A stretch of 64,000 bases of DNA from Piromyces finnis finn (GCA_002104945.1 MCFH01000060.1:1-64000), one strand, 5' to 3'; counted from the stretch's first letter, positions 12,539 through 42,997 are shown. Notes: generated from the letters alone by a model not told the origin. Made by a program: numbers and translations.

Positions 12539-14059
12539 TGTAAAATATTCTAAAGTTCAGGTTTGTATACAACATGTCATGAATATTAGTGGATTCATGA
12601 TTATTTATTTAATTAGTGTTTTATTCGTTTAATTAATTAGAAATATTTTATTATAAAACATAATTAAATAATATTTTAAGAAATATTAATTAATTATAAT
12701 TATTAAGATTTTTATTTATTAAAGTTTGAATTAATATTTCTTTGTTCATTTGATTAAGAAGGAAATTAAAACTAAATTATAAAATAATCATTCCTTCTAC
12801 AAATGATTGATAATATGACTTTTATAATTATTAAATTTAACACGAGTGAAAAGTCATATATAATTAATATATAATTAATTTATAGAATAGTTAATTAATA
12901 TAAATAATTAGTCATGTATTAAATTTAAAATGTATTCCTTAATATTAGAGATAGTATAAATACTCGAGAAAATTCCTATCATTAGGAATTTCGAGAGTTC
13001 ATTACATTTAATATTTACTCTAATTATAATAATAACTAATAAATAAAGATTTTTCTTTAAATAAAAATTTATTAATAAATAAAGTTAATAAAATATTATT
13101 TATTTAAAAATTTACTAATTCATTTATTTAATTAATTGATAAACTTAGGATAAATATGTACGTTCCGACCTAACTGAAGTGAATCCTTACCACAACACTA
13201 AACTAACAATTAAACTAATTATTTTTAATAATAATTTTTATTTATTTATTTATTTATTTTTAAAACTATACTAACTAAACAACCGTTGATTACTTTACCG
13301 TGAAGGATATTTCACCAGAGCCCTCACTAGGTAATCAATTTATATTTATTTAAAACTAAAATTATTAATCTAAACTATAAACTAATTATAAACTAATGTT
13401 AATTTATCTATACTAAATTAACCTATACGATTTTCCAACTATCGTTTCAATAGTTGAAAAATTTTCTTTATTTATACTTTTTAAATAAATTGAATAAATT
13501 CTAATATACATGTTTTAATATTATAATTTTACATTGTTTACATTTATACATTTATTAAAAGAAATTATTTGTATTAAACTATTTAAATTCAATTTATTTA
13601 CTAAAGAATTTTCTAAACTTAAAATAAAGTTTTTATTTATTTACTATTTGGTTGATTATATTTCAAACATATATTCAATTTATTTATTTCTAATTTTGAG
13701 ACTTAGTTTATAAAAAAAAATTTTTTTTATTATCTAAATATTTATTGGTTAAAATTTATTTAATTTAAAATTTTATTTTATCATCAAAAACTTTATCTTA
13801 TCATAAAATTAAATTTTACATAAATTTATGTTAATGTATTGTAATATAAATTTTTGTAATTAAAAAATAAAATTTACATAAATTTATGTTAATGTATTGT
13901 AATATAAATTTTTGTAATTAAAAAATAAAATTTACATAAATTTATGTTAATGTATTGTGATATGAATTTTATGGAAATTTACGGTACATTAATTTAATAC
14001 ATTATACAATATTTTAAATACGTATTAAATACATTATTCTATTAATACAATATTTTACA
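12539..14059 (-). mobile_element. Solo LTR family D (copy D2), interrupted by E1
   Basis: Inverted copy of D1; TSD TTTAT at 12534-38 and 14060-64. Confidence 0.88.
12575..13192 (+). mobile_element. Solo LTR family E (copy E1)
   Basis: TGTCATG...CCTTACCA; TSD CAACA at 12570-74 and 13193-97; inverted copy at 17472-18091. Confidence 0.9.
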
Positions 14060-14099
14060 TTTATTATATGCATTAATATTTCACATAATAAAATTATTA

Positions 14100-15097
14100 T
14101 GTGAAGATATTAACTGGATTTAAAACAAATTCAGATAATATCTATAATTAATTAAACATAATAATTAGAATTAAATGATCCCAATAATTATTTTAAAACA
14201 CCTTTAAAAGTCACCTTTTAAATTTTGGTTCAGTGAAAGGGTTATGATTTCAAAAAATTTAATATCAATACACTATAACCCTTAGCCAAAAATAAACAAA
14301 TACGAAACTACGCATAACTCGCCAAAAACGAGTGCTACGGCTGTAAGTACTACGGCTATGAAACTAGGTTTATTAGAAAGCTTAAGGGAAAAGCTATATT
14401 TTGGTATAATCGCGGTCCTTCTAACTGGTCATTTAAGGAAGATATGATCATTTGAAGATTTTAATAAGTAAATTAAAATTAATATGATATCAAGTATGGA
14501 TCATAGACATTTCTTATGACTTGACGAAAATTAAAAATATATCAATAGAAATTCTAATTATATTAATTTAATTAATGATAGTGACTGTTACTAAAAATAG
14601 AACTAAACCATTTAGGTGTAACAGTTAACATTTATAAATTAAATAATTTTAATTATTATAAAATAGATTAATGGATCAAGTGTTTAAATGATTAATCATA
14701 TGTTTATTTTATTTTATGTCATGACAAAACAAACAAACAAACAAACAAACAATCTTATTATATTATTAACATATTACATGTAATACTTTATTTTTATCAA
14801 TTTAATAATCTGAACAAAGAATATAAAATAGAATGAATTGAATTTGATTTTAATTCTTTGTAAAGATTATAGTTATAATCTTAATTATATAGTTATTAAA
14901 TATATTATCATTTATATTATTATTAATAAATAAATAAAATTTTATAAAAAAAAGTTATTCTAAAGAATAAATATTAATTTTTCATTTGGAAGTTTAAAGG
15001 GTTATTTTATATTTAAATTTAATTTCTTAAAAACATATTTACTATATAATTGATAACATTCTGACCTGGCCGCATAACCAAATCCAAAAACTTAACA
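14100..15097 (+). mobile_element. Solo LTR family F (copy F1)
   Basis: TGTGAAG...CTTAACA, 998 bp; TSD TATTA at 14095-99 and 15098-102; copies at 18097-19094 and 41321-42321. Confidence 0.9.
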
Positions 15098-15164
15098 TAT
15101 TAGCTACATTTTAACACTAATTGTTAAAATGAGATAATGATAATGAAACTATTTATTAAAATAA

Positions 15165-15681
15165 AGAAGAATATACTTATCGAGTTTATTATAAGAGCCT
15201 ATAAATAACGTTTGTGTTAGGGTTTTAGAATATTTTTTATTACAAGAATGTTTTATTTATGTTAAAAGTGTATCAATTTATTTATGTTATTTATTATAAT
15301 TTCTTATAATAATAACTCTTGATTTTCAAATGAAACTCAAGAGGTCTTTTTATATAAAAACTTAAAGAATAAAAGAAAGTTCTAATCTTAATAAATTTCT
15401 TTTCTAGAAAAAGATTAGAAGAAAAAACTAGAAAAGTTTCGATTGATAATCTATTCTTATCAATCATCGTATTATTAGATAAAACCGAATGGATTCGGGA
15501 AAATTCTAATAATCGATTTTTTCTAAATACAATAATTTACATTACATTTAAAATACATTATGTATTATAATAAAATTTAATAAAATTTAATAAAATATTA
15601 AAGGTTAAATAAAAAATATAATAAATTATTTTTAATAAGAAATATAGATTATTTATTATAAAATAAATCTAATTTCTTACA
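15165..15681 (+). mobile_element. Diverged solo LTR family M (copy M1); left boundary uncertain
   Basis: Homologous to 37177-37857 and ends ATTTCTTACA. Followed by AATAA; a possible left AATAA copy is at 15160-64. Confidence 0.6.
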
Positions 15682-15687
15682 AATAAA

Positions 15688-16291
15688 TGGTACAACCTGT
15701 TTGTTTTGTTTGTACCTTTATATGGATCAATACAACTAGAATGAATAAAACAATTATTATATTATAATGAAATAACACAACAATAAAAAATGATTTTTAT
15801 ATTTTATGTATTATTTTTTATATTCTTTTTATTTATCTTTGATCAATAATGTACTATTAATGATTTAAACTCTTATAATAGAAATAAATAAGTATAATTC
15901 ACTAGATTATAATCTGAATATCACTATTAATTCCTACTTAAATCTAATAATATTATTTATCTATCTAGTATTATCACTTATGCCTATTTTCTTATTATTA
16001 TTTCTTATTATCTTTTTATATCGTTTCTTCTTTTAATATTTATTAATTCTCTTTTATTAAATACTCTTTGTTGTAATTAAGGTTTTTAGTCTTTTTAATT
16101 AATTTTATTTATAATTTTTATTTTAGTTATTGCTATAAGCGTTATTAATTAAATCAATAATTGTTAGCTTATAAATTTATATATTAAATTTTTATTAAAC
16201 CTAAAATACTTAAAGTAGAATTATTATTAGTAAAATTAAAGGTTAAATTGGAATTCCTATGCTCTTACATTTTTCTGAATCAGTCGTACCA
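15688..16291 (-). mobile_element. Solo LTR family O (TGATA-type)
   Basis: Terminal inverted repeat TGGTAC...GTACCA; 4-bp TSD TAAA at 15684-87 and 16292-95. Confidence 0.75.
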
Positions 16292-41261: not shown

Positions 41262-41320
41262 TAATTTGTAATACGAGGAGGATATTATCTTAATTCTATA
41301 TTTTACTATAGAAAGTGATA

Positions 41321-42321
41321 TGTGAAGATATTAACTGGATTTAAAACAAATTCAGATAATATCTAATTAATTAAACATAATAATTATAATTAAATGATTT
41401 CAATGATTATTTTAAAACACCTTTAAAAGTCACCTTTTAAATTTTGATTCAGCAAAAGGGTTATGATTTCAAAAATTTAATATCAATACACTATAACCCT
41501 TAACCAAAAATAAACAAACACGAAACAAAGCGTAACTCGCCAAAAACGAACGCTACGGCTATAAGTACTACGGTTGTGGAACTAAGTTTATTAGAAAGCT
41601 TAAGGAAAAAGCAATATTTTGGTACAATCGCGGTCATTCTAACTGGTCATTTAAGAAAGATATGGTCATTTGAAGATTTTAATAAGTAAATTAAAATCAA
41701 TATGATATCAAGTATGGATCATAGACATTTCTTATGACTTGACGAAAATTAAAAATATATCAATAGAAATTTTAATTATATTAATTTAATTAATGATAGT
41801 GACTGTTACTAAAAATAGAACTAAACCATTTAGGTGTAACAGTTAACATTTATAAATTAAATAATTCTAATTATTATAAAATAGGTTAATGGATCAAGTG
41901 TTTAAATGATTAATCATGTTTATTTTATTTTATTTATTTTATGTCATGACAAAACAAACAAACAAACAAACAAACAATCTTATTATGTTATTAATATATT
42001 ACATGTAATACTTTATTTTTATCAATTTAATAATCTGAACAAAGAATATAAAATAGAATGAATTGAATTTGATTTTAATTCTTTGTAAAGATTATAGTTA
42101 TAATCTTAATTATATAGTTATTAAATATATTATCATTTATATTATTATTACTAAATAAATAAAATTTTATAAAAAAGTTATTCTAAAAAATAAATATTAA
42201 TTTTTCATTTGGAAGTTTAAAGTGTTATTTTATATTTAAATTTAATTTCTTAAAAAACATATTTACTATATAATTAATAACATTCTGACCTGGCCGCATA
42301 ACCAAATCCCAAAACTTAACA
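41321..42321 (+). mobile_element. Solo LTR family F (copy F3)
   Basis: TSD TGATA at 41316-20 and 42322-26. Confidence 0.9.
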
Positions 42322-42670
42322 TGATAATATCTGTATCTAAAAATTTATAAATAAAAATAAGGAAAATAAAAATAGAATAAATGATTTTTATACTTGTTCA
42401 TTTGCAAGTGTTAGTTAGTTTTTAATATAAAATGTTATTTTATTTAATTATAAAATTATTATATTATCATATTATTTAATAACTCTAGTATTATTAAATA
42501 ATTAAAATTTAATACATCTAGTATGTATTATAAATGTTGTAAAATAAATATTGTTTTATTAAGTATAAATATCTAATTTTTCTCTCTTGGATAATTAGTA
42601 ACCATAATATATAAATTTAATATAACTATATCTAATTTTTATGGATTATTAGGAACATCTTTTAAAAAAA

Positions 42671-42822
42671 TTATTATTATTATTATTATTATTATTATTA
42701 TTATTATTATTATTATTATTATTATTATTATTATTATTATTATTATTATTATTATTATTATTATTATTATTATTATTATTATTATTATTATTATTATTAT
42801 TATTATTATTATTATTATTATT
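42671..42822. repeat. (ATT)n microsatellite, about 50 units
   Basis: Perfect trinucleotide run inside J3. Confidence 0.95.
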
Positions 42823-42858
42823 AATTTATAATTTATAAATTTAATTATTTATCATTTG

Positions 42859-42997
42859 TGATACAATAGAGAATATTATCATAATTCTATATTTTACTAT
42901 AGAAAGTGATATGTCACGAATACTAGTGAAATATACAATTTCAAGATCACTTGAAATTGTAGATTTCACTTATAAAATTTCAAAATCAACAATATTA
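42859..42997 (+). mobile_element. Truncated J LTR (42859-42911) carrying a truncated H LTR (from 42912)
   Basis: The J start matches 41269-41320. TGTCACGAATACTAGTG is the inverted end of H1. Both are cut off at about 42997. Confidence 0.75.

Follow-up and report, generated by a model that had tools for sequence, protein, structure and literature searches.

Families of LTR retrotransposons occupy three discrete distances upstream of tRNA genes in Piromyces finnis

Introduction

Do LTR retrotransposon families that coexist beside the same tRNA genes each insert at a distance of their own? The question is raised by a stretch of 64,000 nucleotides from Piromyces finnis (GCA_002104945.1, MCFH01000060.1:1-64000; the whole stretch is hereafter called the window), in which LTRs are nested within one another in three stacks. 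A first-pass annotation of the window had proposed three family-specific integration niches, at about -12, -30 and -62 bp from the tRNA. No case of safe-haven integration is better understood than the targeting of Pol III genes. To our knowledge, this targeting has so far been studied singly, by element and by register (Ty3, Ty1, TRE5-A, DGLT-A and Tj1), and our search of the literature returned no paper linking Piromyces or the Neocallimastigomycota to tRNA-targeted retrotransposons. The present analysis adds the register at -30 and counts for the whole genome.

Results

LTR stacks in the window

Two tRNA genes, and only two, were detected by ARAGORN and Rfam over the whole window: tRNA-Ser(TGA) at 20770..20851 on the plus strand (Rfam RF00005, 58.5 bits), which is the target of the middle stack, and tRNA-Cys(GCA) at 26849..26922 on the minus strand (base 1 at 26921; identified by both programs), which is the target of the right-hand stack. 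The LTR families are designated H, F, E, D, G and A, of which F, G and A are also referred to as K, P and X. The junctions of all six revealed TG...CA termini and a 5-bp target-site duplication (TSD).

In the middle stack, H1 is a solo LTR of 1100 bp (19604..20703, minus strand) flanked by ATTAG at 19599-19603 and 20704-20708. The first-pass annotation had placed its TSD 61 bp from tRNA-Ser (gap 20709-20769), and the re-read junctions gave exactly this value; the LTR end is 66 bp from the gene, with the LTR start TGTCACG toward it. H1 is nested in, and splits, a G-family LTR (P2; 19153..20756, plus strand; TSD AAAGC at 19148-52 and 20757-61) whose TSD and LTR end lie 8 and 13 bp from tRNA-Ser, respectively. 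Two further solo LTRs, E2 (17472..18091, minus strand) and F2 (K2; 998 bp, 18097..19094, minus strand), were inserted at the same CACTT target, which is now found in three copies (17467-71, 18092-96 and 19095-99). Once the younger G-family LTR carrying H1 is subtracted, the gap between E2/F2 and tRNA-Ser amounts to 53 + 8 = 61 bp, as had been claimed. The stretch of about 50 bp that follows F2 is the tail of an older LTR of the -12 register; we rejected it as a portion of the F LTR because different loci show the junction displaced by 0, 3 or 6 nt and because an empty site exists. A copia element downstream of tRNA-Ser was considered as a fourth, downstream register and was dropped, two independent loci being too few.

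The right-hand stack includes a full-length Ty3/gypsy element of the A family (26936..33594, minus strand; TSD ATTTG) with 617-bp LTRs that are 99.5% identical, and its LTR end is found 14 bp from base 1 of tRNA-Cys. With this element subtracted, the TSD of the G-family LTR G3 (P3; 33598..34908, plus strand; TSD TAATT) lies 7 bp and its LTR start 12 bp from the gene. G3 carries D3, a solo LTR of 808 bp (33617..34424, unstranded; TSD GTGAC at 33612-16 and 34425-29), and the end of D3 was 31 bp from base 1 of tRNA-Cys when it inserted. The solo LTR F3 (K3; 41321..42322, plus strand; TSD TGATA) is located 49 bp into an older LTR tail (41267-41315) which abuts the reused TAATT target, and H2, the truncated start of an H LTR (42912..42995, plus strand; TSD TGATA at 42907-11), is located 50 bp into an older LTR tail that begins at 42857. 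The distances given by the first-pass annotation, 61 bp for F3 (49 + 12) and 62 bp for H2 (50 + 12), are obtained again under its parse, provided that all of 26936-41261 is a later insertion at the reused TAATT. The so-called TGATA family and the sequence AAGTTAACCC may represent, respectively, internal sequence and the opposite end of the older LTR family of the -12 register whose tail follows F2, and we set aside their treatment as separate elements in favor of this reading.

In the left stack, the distances of E1, F1, D1 and D2 hinge on a tRNA gene assumed to lie beyond the start of the contig, as ARAGORN and Rfam detected none left of position 20770. The solo LTR E1 (12575..13192, plus strand; TSD CAACA at 12570-74 and 13193-97) was inserted 38 bp inside D2, an inverted D copy (12538-12574 plus 13198-14059), and this E-in-D arrangement recurs at position 194717 of contig C135, 67 bp from a tRNA gene. 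The stack also contains the solo LTR F1 (K1; 14100..15097, plus strand) and the D1 LTR (11200..12037, plus strand), which is nested in the G-family copy G1 at the point that D3 occupies within G3.

Genome-wide distances to tRNA genes

We then searched the 56-Mb genome, which is very AT-rich, with queries composed of an LTR end, a spacer and a tRNA 5' motif, and identical flanks were merged before counting. Spacers of roughly 3-70 bp were scanned for each family, and spacers of 68-128 bp were scanned additionally for H. Distances were measured from the LTR end to base 1 of the tRNA, using a generic tRNA motif as an anchor, with an error of up to 1 bp.

This search yielded three sharp distance classes. 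The first register (11-17 bp, with the 5-bp duplication at about -12 to -8) is used by A (11-14 bp, n = 8), by G (11-17 bp, n = 21) and by several other families. The second register (28-31 bp, duplication at about -30 to -26) is used by D (n = 11 distinct flanks). The third register (62-69 bp with a mode of 66-67 bp, duplication at about -66 to -62) is shared by H (64-68 bp, n = 27 distinct flanks), F (63-69 bp, n = 27 distinct flanks) and E (62-67 bp, n = 4). The three niches proposed from the window are therefore confirmed across the genome, including the positions that had been assigned to D (-30/-31) and, near the start site, to A and G; the distance histograms of the families are narrow and the three classes do not overlap. 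The H scan returned 47 matches against 0 with a reversed-pattern control. No real tRNA was found for H at 68-128 bp, or for any family outside its own distance class in the scans of roughly 3-70 bp. A separate set of 36 tRNA upstream regions, sampled without redundancy, likewise showed repeat boundaries concentrated at 8-17 and 60-66 bp.

The targeted genes comprise the isotypes Ser, Ala, Cys, Gly, Arg, Glu, Met and Trp, and their flanks and TSDs are diverse, which indicates that the sites are fixed by the distance to the gene and not by local sequence. Insertions are found in unrelated DNA and within older LTRs belonging to many families, and one D copy sits within a tRNA-Glu, 28 bp from the neighboring tRNA-Arg. 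A filled site (L049), with an F LTR and the TSD TATCA 66 nt from tRNA-Arg, could be compared to a flank (L048) that is identical but for the absence of the LTR. Single targets have also been used repeatedly: three H copies alternate with TAAAA beside tRNA-Cys on contig C13 (H-TAAAA-H-TAAAA-H), and another locus (L003) presents the series H-F-H with TCACT throughout. Orientation is strongly biased, the TTCACA end of F facing the tRNA in a ratio of 27:0 and the GTGACA end of H in a ratio of 27:3, such that in both families the 5' LTR is turned toward the tRNA and transcription is divergent. Approximately 3 of about 25 sampled independent H copies (L018, L019 and L029) lacked both a tRNA and an LTR nest in the surrounding 1.5 kb, so that targeting is not absolute; an Rfam scan of 20 H loci identified no 5S, U6, 7SL or RNase P genes beside H copies. 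Overall, these results support the existence of three discrete registers, with each tested family restricted to one of them at many isotypes and in unrelated flanks.

Lineages, gene content and integrase

The families E, F, H and D had initially been described from solo LTRs only. This is incorrect for H and F, for which full-length Ty3/gypsy copies exist, and D presents LTR-internal junctions at five loci. The H element encodes a gag matching PF03732 (1.8e-9) and an integrase with an SH3_Tf2-1 domain (4.6e-15), while F encodes a PF03732 gag (2.5e-10) and a pol with RVT_1, RT_RNaseH and Integrase_H2C2 in that order. The pol domains of the A element are ordered PR-RT-RNase H-IN, and its gag is of the Retrotrans_gag type. 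The true orientation of H was set by the gag ORF in three copies (L023, L025 and L026), and H1 is hence on the minus strand. The 3' flank of H in L024 and L027 had been a candidate for the primer-binding region of H and was ruled out by the gag ORF; this ORF shows the reverse orientation. The flank is on the PPT side, and the integrase C-terminus lies 0.9 kb upstream of it. A search of H gag against a library of 1.84 billion proteins, from which the source genome was excluded, returned only gag-sized relatives with 44-60% identity, and the best relative that was looked up (P0002) is on a 1.9-kb gut-type metagenome contig.

The gag proteins of H and F are 58% identical, the two elements have the leader ATAATCTTTACC in common, and their LTR termini are similar to each other and to those of E. 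The pol of F is 52% identical to that of A, and the pol of G is 61% identical to that of A and about 40% identical to that of F. These sequence comparisons support the view that register tracks lineage. For E, F and H, a description as a single lineage with one shared register is preferable to that of three independent solutions. The proposed partition among families is partly supported, in that there are three registers and each tested family uses one.

The H integrase extends about 70 residues past its SH3 domain, and the last 60 or so were modeled as three strands plus a helix (pLDDT 59-73). The top Foldseek matches of this C-terminal model were all chromodomains (TM 0.6-0.8, 27-31% identity), with an E-value of only about 0.04; the model of the integrase overall is of low confidence (pLDDT 40) and its Pfam Chromo match is not significant. 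The C-terminus of the H integrase aligns to the CTD of the Ty3 integrase in PDB 7q5b and is 40% identical to that of the A integrase over 131 aa, the latter matching Pfam Chromo with E = 0.067. The H integrase is thus predicted to end in an SH3 domain and a putative chromodomain, the arrangement that characterizes chromoviruses.

Discussion

We consider it reasonably probable that at least three Ty3/gypsy lineages are directed to tRNA genes of this genome, each at its own upstream distance, by an integrase tethered to the Pol III initiation machinery. By analogy to yeast and Dictyostelium, a tether to TFIIIB/TFIIIC that docks in a lineage-specific manner is plausible. The machinery would be placed by the gene-internal promoter, with TFIIIC positioning TFIIIB, and a lineage-specific SH3-chromodomain module at the integrase C-terminus would pick the face of the complex on which the intasome docks. 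In Ty3, the site is set by the tandem of CTD and chromodomain, which contacts TBP and Brf1 (PMC8632968). The first register would then be Ty3-like, at the transcription start, and the third would lie just past the upstream edge of TFIIIB with nearly fixed orientation. The second would fall within DNA that is covered by TFIIIB in yeast, which conflicts with the expected occlusion by TFIIIB if the yeast geometry holds, and it may use a different contact or state.

Alternatively, the -66 register could arise where the margin of the first upstream nucleosome leaves DNA exposed or bent, i.e., a Ty1-like targeting of chromatin with no TFIIIB tether. Ty1 insertions upstream of Pol III genes do fall in nucleosomal DNA, with a periodicity of about 80 bp (PMC3545840), and the putative chromodomain of H would be a histone-tail reader fold. 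This scenario appears unlikely, however: the spread is only about 5 bp, H shows no second peak at 68-128 bp, orientation is nearly fixed, and the register stayed constant although the upstream DNA was repeatedly replaced by different LTRs.

It is also conceivable that targeting is loose and that purifying selection or recombination purged other distances, leaving three apparent peaks, since our counts are of surviving genomic copies and insertions nearer to or in the gene would be deleterious. We regard this as very unlikely. The peaks are 4-6 bp wide, and selection could not produce family-specific peaks because the same positions tolerate the LTRs of other families. In addition, all 40 scored genomic copies of the H LTR are 99-100% identical (terminal 304 bp), which leaves little time for selection.

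Even less credible is sequence-specific insertion into set positions of older -12 LTRs, with the tRNA distance as a by-product. Many copies do lie about 50 bp (H and F) or 14-18 bp (D) into the tails of such LTRs, and junctions recur, as for F in the A-family LTR. Nevertheless, the distance of H and F to the tRNA is the same across ten or more unrelated types of flank, among them non-LTR DNA ahead of tRNA-Ala. Where a single LTR family serves as host, the point of insertion varies by 0, 3 or 6 nt, and un-nested copies remain 65-66 bp from the tRNA, one copy at 97 bp being accounted for by 66 bp plus a later 31-bp insert. The TSDs are without consensus, and the D copy inside tRNA-Glu still lies 28 bp from tRNA-Arg. 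Finally, the least likely explanation is that segmental duplications, haplotigs or tandem units inflated a few real events. Duplicate flanks (C15/C78 and C214/C228), 5.5-kb units (C47, C74 and C79) and recurring Glu-Arg-Trp clusters in the sample do exist, but 27 H, 27 F and 11 D distinct flanks are left after merging.

Returning to tethering by the Pol III machinery, the registers might, more speculatively, mean that integrases dock on the Pol III pre-initiation complex of this early-diverging fungus in three physically distinct ways: at the start site, inside the DNA expected to be covered by TFIIIB, and at the upstream side of TFIIIB, where orientation would be enforced. We consider this extension possible but doubtful. 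If true, the second register would imply a TFIIIB-independent tether (TFIIIC or Pol III) or else exploitation of the bend induced by TBP. Given the close relationship of the -12 and -66 lineages (about 52% pol identity), it would then take only a small change in the SH3-chromodomain module to shift the site by 54 bp, and the genome would offer a natural swap experiment on how an integrase reads a transcription complex. Related, recently active elements with three non-overlapping and near base-exact registers in one genome constitute a comparative system for the integrase residues that fix docking geometry, and the registers are three natural rulers of where the Pol III machinery lies on DNA, in a fungal lineage lacking such data. 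They also provide an explanation for the stacks of LTRs, tens of kilobases long, that surround tRNA genes and dominate the repeat structure of the assembly.

Ty3 of Saccharomyces cerevisiae (Metaviridae) is tethered by TFIIIB and integrates at the Pol III start site. The elements described here resemble it in their Ty3/gypsy gene order and in an integrase whose SH3 CTD is followed by a chromodomain-type module, which is putative here. Like Ty3, whose insertions precede the 5' end of the mature tRNA by about 12-17 bp, A and G insert at 11-17 bp and reuse the same site. The start-site spacing of Ty3 is thus found in G (n = 21) and A (n = 8) but not in D (28-31 bp) or H, F and E (62-69 bp), and P. 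finnis differs from the Ty3 system by the further registers at -30 and -66 in coexisting related lineages, by the nearly fixed orientation of H and F, and by a very AT-rich host that is probably an anaerobic gut fungus. Ty1 of S. cerevisiae, a copia-type element of the Pseudoviridae, is likewise found upstream of Pol III genes, where it is tethered by the Pol III subunit AC40 and inserts in a window of roughly 1 kb. In contrast, the elements studied here have a gypsy gene order, and H presents a single peak at 64-68 bp with no periodicity of about 80 bp. The Dictyostelium element TRE5-A is a non-LTR retrotransposon that inserts about 48-50 bp upstream of tRNA genes by target-primed reverse transcription with an ORF1-mediated tether. 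Its target is likewise a fixed zone, located upstream of where TFIIIB covers the tRNA gene, but it is not homologous and its window is broader. Tj1 of Schizosaccharomyces japonicus is co-directional with the tRNA (PMC4600332), whereas H and F point their 5' LTR toward the tRNA from 66 bp away.

Similar distances are known from the dictyostelid DGLT-A elements, which are also Ty3/gypsy elements upstream of tRNA genes. DGLT-A.1 of D. lacteum inserts 63-64 bp upstream (n = 4), near the 63-69 bp of H and F, and Dl_DGLT-A.2 at 55-65 bp (PMC5006619, Table 1), while other dictyostelid DGLT-A elements insert at about 15 bp, and some at 13 to 34 bp (PMC5006619). DGLT-A is defined as lacking a chromodomain or C-terminal integrase extension (PMC5006619), whereas the residues of H past the SH3 domain were modeled as a chromodomain. 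The resemblance between H and DGLT-A is therefore one of insertion position and not of family membership. DGLT-A elements present approximately one register per family group and species, with very small n, in contrast to the three registers, each with tens of events, found here in a single genome.

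Three distance classes upstream of tRNA genes

LTR retrotransposons of Piromyces finnis insert in three gene-anchored registers upstream of tRNA genes, with lineage specificity, target reuse and a bias in orientation. We searched the whole assembly (56.46 Mb in 232 contigs, the window being the first 64 kb of contig C190) for patterns in which the terminal 10-15 bases of an LTR are joined, through a spacer of about 3-70 bp, to a generic motif covering tRNA positions 1-18 (GNNNNNNTRNYNNANNNG). Distance was taken as the length of the pattern match; only matches with a recognisable tRNA start in their 3' part were kept and identical flanks were collapsed. 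A first-look tRNA search gave roughly 2,900 candidate tRNA places genome-wide.

The most distant class comprises three families. Family H, scanned by its GTGACA end, was found twice at 64 bp, three times at 65, 13 times at 66, eight times at 67 and once at 68 (n = 27), and family K (named F in the first-pass annotation) twice at 63 bp, four times at 64, three at 65, nine at 66, seven at 67 and two at 69 (n = 27); reversed-pattern controls returned zero matches for both. Family E was found at 62, 63, 65 and 67 bp (n = 4). Family D occupies the middle class, with two events at 28 bp, three at 29, five at 30 and one at 31 (n = 11; its control gave 19 matches, none of them tRNA starts). The nearest class consists of P (formerly G), at 11-17 bp with a mode of 12 (n = 21, plus 4 at 11-13 bp for the other LTR end), and X (formerly A), at 11-14 bp (n = 8). 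Within the scanned range, no real tRNA was found outside a family's own distance class for any family, and rescanning H at 68-128 bp returned solely secondary matches inside tRNAs already counted. Chance can be dismissed for H because all 27 events fall in a 5-bp span of a 61-bp scan.

An independent locus sample of about 290 kb was assembled from 30 H loci and 20 tRNA-centred pieces of 10 kb. Comparison of the library LTRs with 53 tRNAs placed P at 11-13 bp, X at 13, K at 65-66, E at 62 and 67, and H at 64-67; one K copy at 97 bp corresponds to 66 bp plus a later 31-bp insert. In a family-blind count over 36 non-redundant upstream regions, repeat boundaries clustered at 8-17 and 60-66 bp. The per-family distance histogram had been set beforehand as the refutation test for the proposed niches, and it showed sharp, non-overlapping classes with no broad spread. 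The three-register observation is confirmed, and the interpretation attached to it by the first-pass annotation is partly supported.

The insert in the displaced K copy (locus L046, moved from 66 to 97 bp) is a 31-bp unit, TGTATAATATATTTATAATTATTATTTATCA, that starts with TG, ends with CA and lies in the -12 register (L046:3286-3382; L048 upstream of 3237; window 10924-11180). This resembles an LTR of which just the two ends remain.

Insertion sites in the window

GC content in the window ranges from about 14 to 40% per 2-kb bin. ARAGORN and Rfam identified two tRNA genes, tRNA-Ser(TGA) at 20770-20851 (+) and tRNA-Cys(GCA) at 26849-26922 (-), and nested LTRs and full-length elements fill the DNA between and around them. 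A Ty1/copia element lies between the two genes (about 20876-26740), the Ty3/gypsy element of the A family occupies 26936-33594 and two more gypsy elements are found left of 10 kb. Among the LTR nests, an ORF of 1507 aa (48635-53158, -) with RVT_1 as its sole domain is probably a non-LTR retrotransposon. An 18-bp tandem repeat array (23825-24403) was observed inside the copia ORF and a long (ATT)n microsatellite (42676-42822) inside an older LTR between F3 and H2.

Upstream of tRNA-Ser, a G-family LTR (19153-20756) split by H1 is flanked on both sides by the target site duplication (TSD) AAAGC and ends 8 bp from the gene. H1 itself (19604-20703, TSD ATTAG) leaves a gap of 61 bp (20709-20769). 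With the G insertion removed, F2 (18097-19094, TSD CACTT) lies 53 + 8 = 61 bp from tRNA-Ser, and so does E2 (17472-18091) at the same CACTT target; CACTT is present three times because F2 and E2 occupy one target. Re-reading these junctions gave the same values that the first-pass annotation had reported for H1 and for E2/F2. Upstream of tRNA-Cys, the A element (TSD ATTTG) leaves 9 bp and G3 (TSD TAATT) leaves 7 bp. D3 (33617-34424, TSD GTGAC), inserted in G3, ends 31 bp from base 1 of tRNA-Cys, within the -30/-31 niche claimed for D. F3 (41321-42322, TSD TGATA) lies 49 bp into the tail of an older LTR, next to which stands a third TAATT copy, and the F3 gap is 61 bp provided that all intervening DNA is later insertion into the reused TAATT target. 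By the same reasoning H2 (from 42912, TSD TGATA) has a gap of 50 + 12 = 62 bp. The values proposed for F3 and H2 were reproduced, subject to that reuse of TAATT.

The left stack holds E1 (12575-13192, TSD CAACA), F1 (14100-15097), D1 and D2. Since no tRNA is detectable there by ARAGORN and Rfam in the window, distances to a tRNA in this stack are assumptions. They gain support from the recurrence of E inside D at C135:194717, beside a real tRNA: E lies 38 bp from the D end, and D and E are 30 and 67 bp from the gene.

Distance is measured from the gene

The registers do not follow local sequence. At least ten unrelated kinds of DNA make up the 66-bp flanks of H and K, among them tails from many different older LTR families and, ahead of tRNA-Ala, non-LTR DNA; the 5-bp duplications have no consensus. 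Where K entered one older LTR family, the junction shifts by 0, 3 or 6 nt, yet un-nested copies keep to 65-66 bp from the tRNA. Locus L049 carries K with TSD TATCA, 66 nt from tRNA-Arg; the same flank in L048 has a single TATCA and no K, forming a filled/empty pair. D ends 14-18 nt into the tails of several families of the -12 register. A D-type LTR was also found to end inside a tRNA-Glu, 28 bp upstream of the adjacent tRNA-Arg (G000:C184:47409-47465), in a Glu-Arg pair only 10 bp apart. Upstream DNA has repeatedly been replaced by new LTRs and the registers persist, which implies that the ruler must start from the gene itself. Such a ruler would be expected, by analogy with yeast, if TFIIIC, bound at the internal promoter, positions TFIIIB upstream.

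At C184 the register of the downstream tRNA-Arg destroys the neighbouring tRNA-Glu; ARAGORN calls the related loci L038-L040 tRNA-Glu with an intron of about 890 bp. Elsewhere, three or more H solo LTRs stand head to tail with the same 5 bp (TAAAA) between each (L008, L009, L017; G000:C13:1063166-1065677), the last lying 65-66 bp from tRNA-Cys. This arrangement fits repeated integration into a regenerated target followed by LTR-LTR recombination. Finally, blocks of tRNA plus LTR have been amplified as segmental or tandem duplications: three contigs (C47, C74 and C79:834-846 kb) carry many tandem copies of a ~5.5-kb unit in which an H end, 65 bp from a tRNA, lies within an A-family LTR.

Orientation and exceptions to targeting

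K presents the same LTR end to the tRNA in 27/27 events, and a genome-wide scan with its other end found no tRNA. For H the ratio of ends facing the tRNA is 27:3. Judging from gag and PPT evidence, the facing end is the LTR start in both families, so that element and tRNA are divergently transcribed. For P and D, both orientations are found.

Three H copies of a 90%-identity subfamily (L018, L019, L029) have clean 5-bp TSDs (TCATC, AACTC), but within 1.5 kb of them neither a tRNA or other Pol III gene nor an LTR nest was found; one of their flanks resembles coding sequence. H targeting either has exceptions or extends to a target of unrecognised type.

The copia element lies between convergent tRNA genes and begins 24 bp beyond tRNA-Ser, immediately past its T-run terminator (window 20852-20890, 26427-26750). 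The same LTR start was found about 30 bp after another tRNA (C13:890775-890845, twice, 6.1 kb apart). This element may represent a downstream register, although just two independent loci were found.

Element identities and lineages

The niches at three distances proposed by the first-pass annotation hold as distance classes and in their lineage specificity; its description of E, F, H and D as solo LTRs only does not, since full-length copies exist for K and H, and junctions between LTR and internal sequence for D (five loci; for example C166:378113 and C176:389998). At 20 places a purine-rich tract (…CCTAGGGAGGGCGT) stands before the start of the K LTR (TGTGAAG…). For several of these, a K end 66-69 bp away from a tRNA is found at a spacing of about 6.4 kb (on C208, 16011 and 22420). 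On this sequence evidence, these pairs are full-length elements in the register; K copies lie, for example, at C208:15.0-22.4 kb and C193:209.5-217.0 kb. In L049, the leader ATAATCTTTACC comes after the K 5' LTR that lies 66 nt from tRNA-Arg. Next are a gag of 341 aa (PF03732) and a pol whose reading frame runs uninterrupted for 927 aa until the locus stops; its RT, RNase H and integrase zinc finger are in gypsy order.

For H, 770 bp beside the TTTTACA end are common to three loci and encode an intact gag start. Because this start is encoded on the strand opposite to the initial orientation, the true H LTR is TGTCACG…CTTTTACA. One 7.7-kb H element on C153 (181.9-189.7 kb) has L025 and L024 as its LTRs. 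Its integrase C-terminus, located upstream of the 3' LTR, carries an SH3_Tf2-1 domain (4.6e-15) alignable with the Ty3 integrase CTD (PDB 7q5b); the roughly 70 residues that follow are predicted to form three strands and a helix, and their best structural matches are all chromodomains (low-to-moderate confidence). The integrase C-terminus of the -66 lineage appears to have a Ty3-like architecture.

K and H gag are 58% identical, and LTR termini are alike in K, H and E. K and X pol are 52% identical over RT-RH-IN, the P element in L038 shares 61% identity with X and about 40% with K, and the integrase C-termini of H and X are 40% identical. These relations indicate that register follows lineage, with (X, P) at -12 and (H, K, probably E) at -66. 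The two lineages are fairly closely related, and the integrase C-terminal module is where they diverge most.

A leader of about 350 bp that finishes with ...TGGACACAAAAACATCATTCGTAAGGGACGGGACC is common to the G-family element (L038:5386-5800) and the A family. This leader directly follows an H-type GTGACA end at C15:41105 and C46:55322, which suggests chimeric or nested elements at these two loci.

Possible mechanism and comparison with known systems

In Ty3, the CTD-chromodomain tandem of an outer integrase subunit binds TBP and Brf1, and TFIIIB covers -15 to -32 from the start site, which sets integration at 2-3 bp ahead of that site (PMC8632968). If the -12 families act like Ty3, the start site would lie a few bases before the mature tRNA 5' end. 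The D duplication (-30 to -26) would then fall inside the DNA covered by TFIIIB, and the H/K duplication (-66 to -62) some 20-25 bp beyond its upstream edge. By this analogy we moderately favour lineage-specific docking of integrase on the Pol III initiation complex. Alternatively, the -66 register could reflect a nucleosome edge, as the chromodomain predicted in H might suggest, but the 5-bp spread at -66, the absence of periodicity and the orientation bias make this less likely than integrase docking.

In the searched library, we found no paper linking Piromyces or Neocallimastigomycota with tRNA-targeted retrotransposons. Among known elements, Ty3 inserts about -12 to -17 upstream of tRNA genes (PMC5006619) and Tj1 at -5 to -11 (PMC4600332), while DGLT-A averages 15 bp with a range of 13-33 and the non-LTR TRE5 inserts about 50 bp upstream (PMC5006619). 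A gypsy register at roughly -64 has a precedent in six DGLT-A copies of D. lacteum, four of Dl_DGLT-A.1 at 63-64 bp and two of Dl_DGLT-A.2 at 55-65 bp (PMC5006619, Table 1). Fixed orientation was formerly called unique to Tj1, whose polarity is opposite to that of K and H (PMC4600332). What is new in P. finnis is that three mutually exclusive registers coexist in a single genome, and also their precision, the event numbers, the fixed orientation, the predicted chromovirus background and the host lineage.
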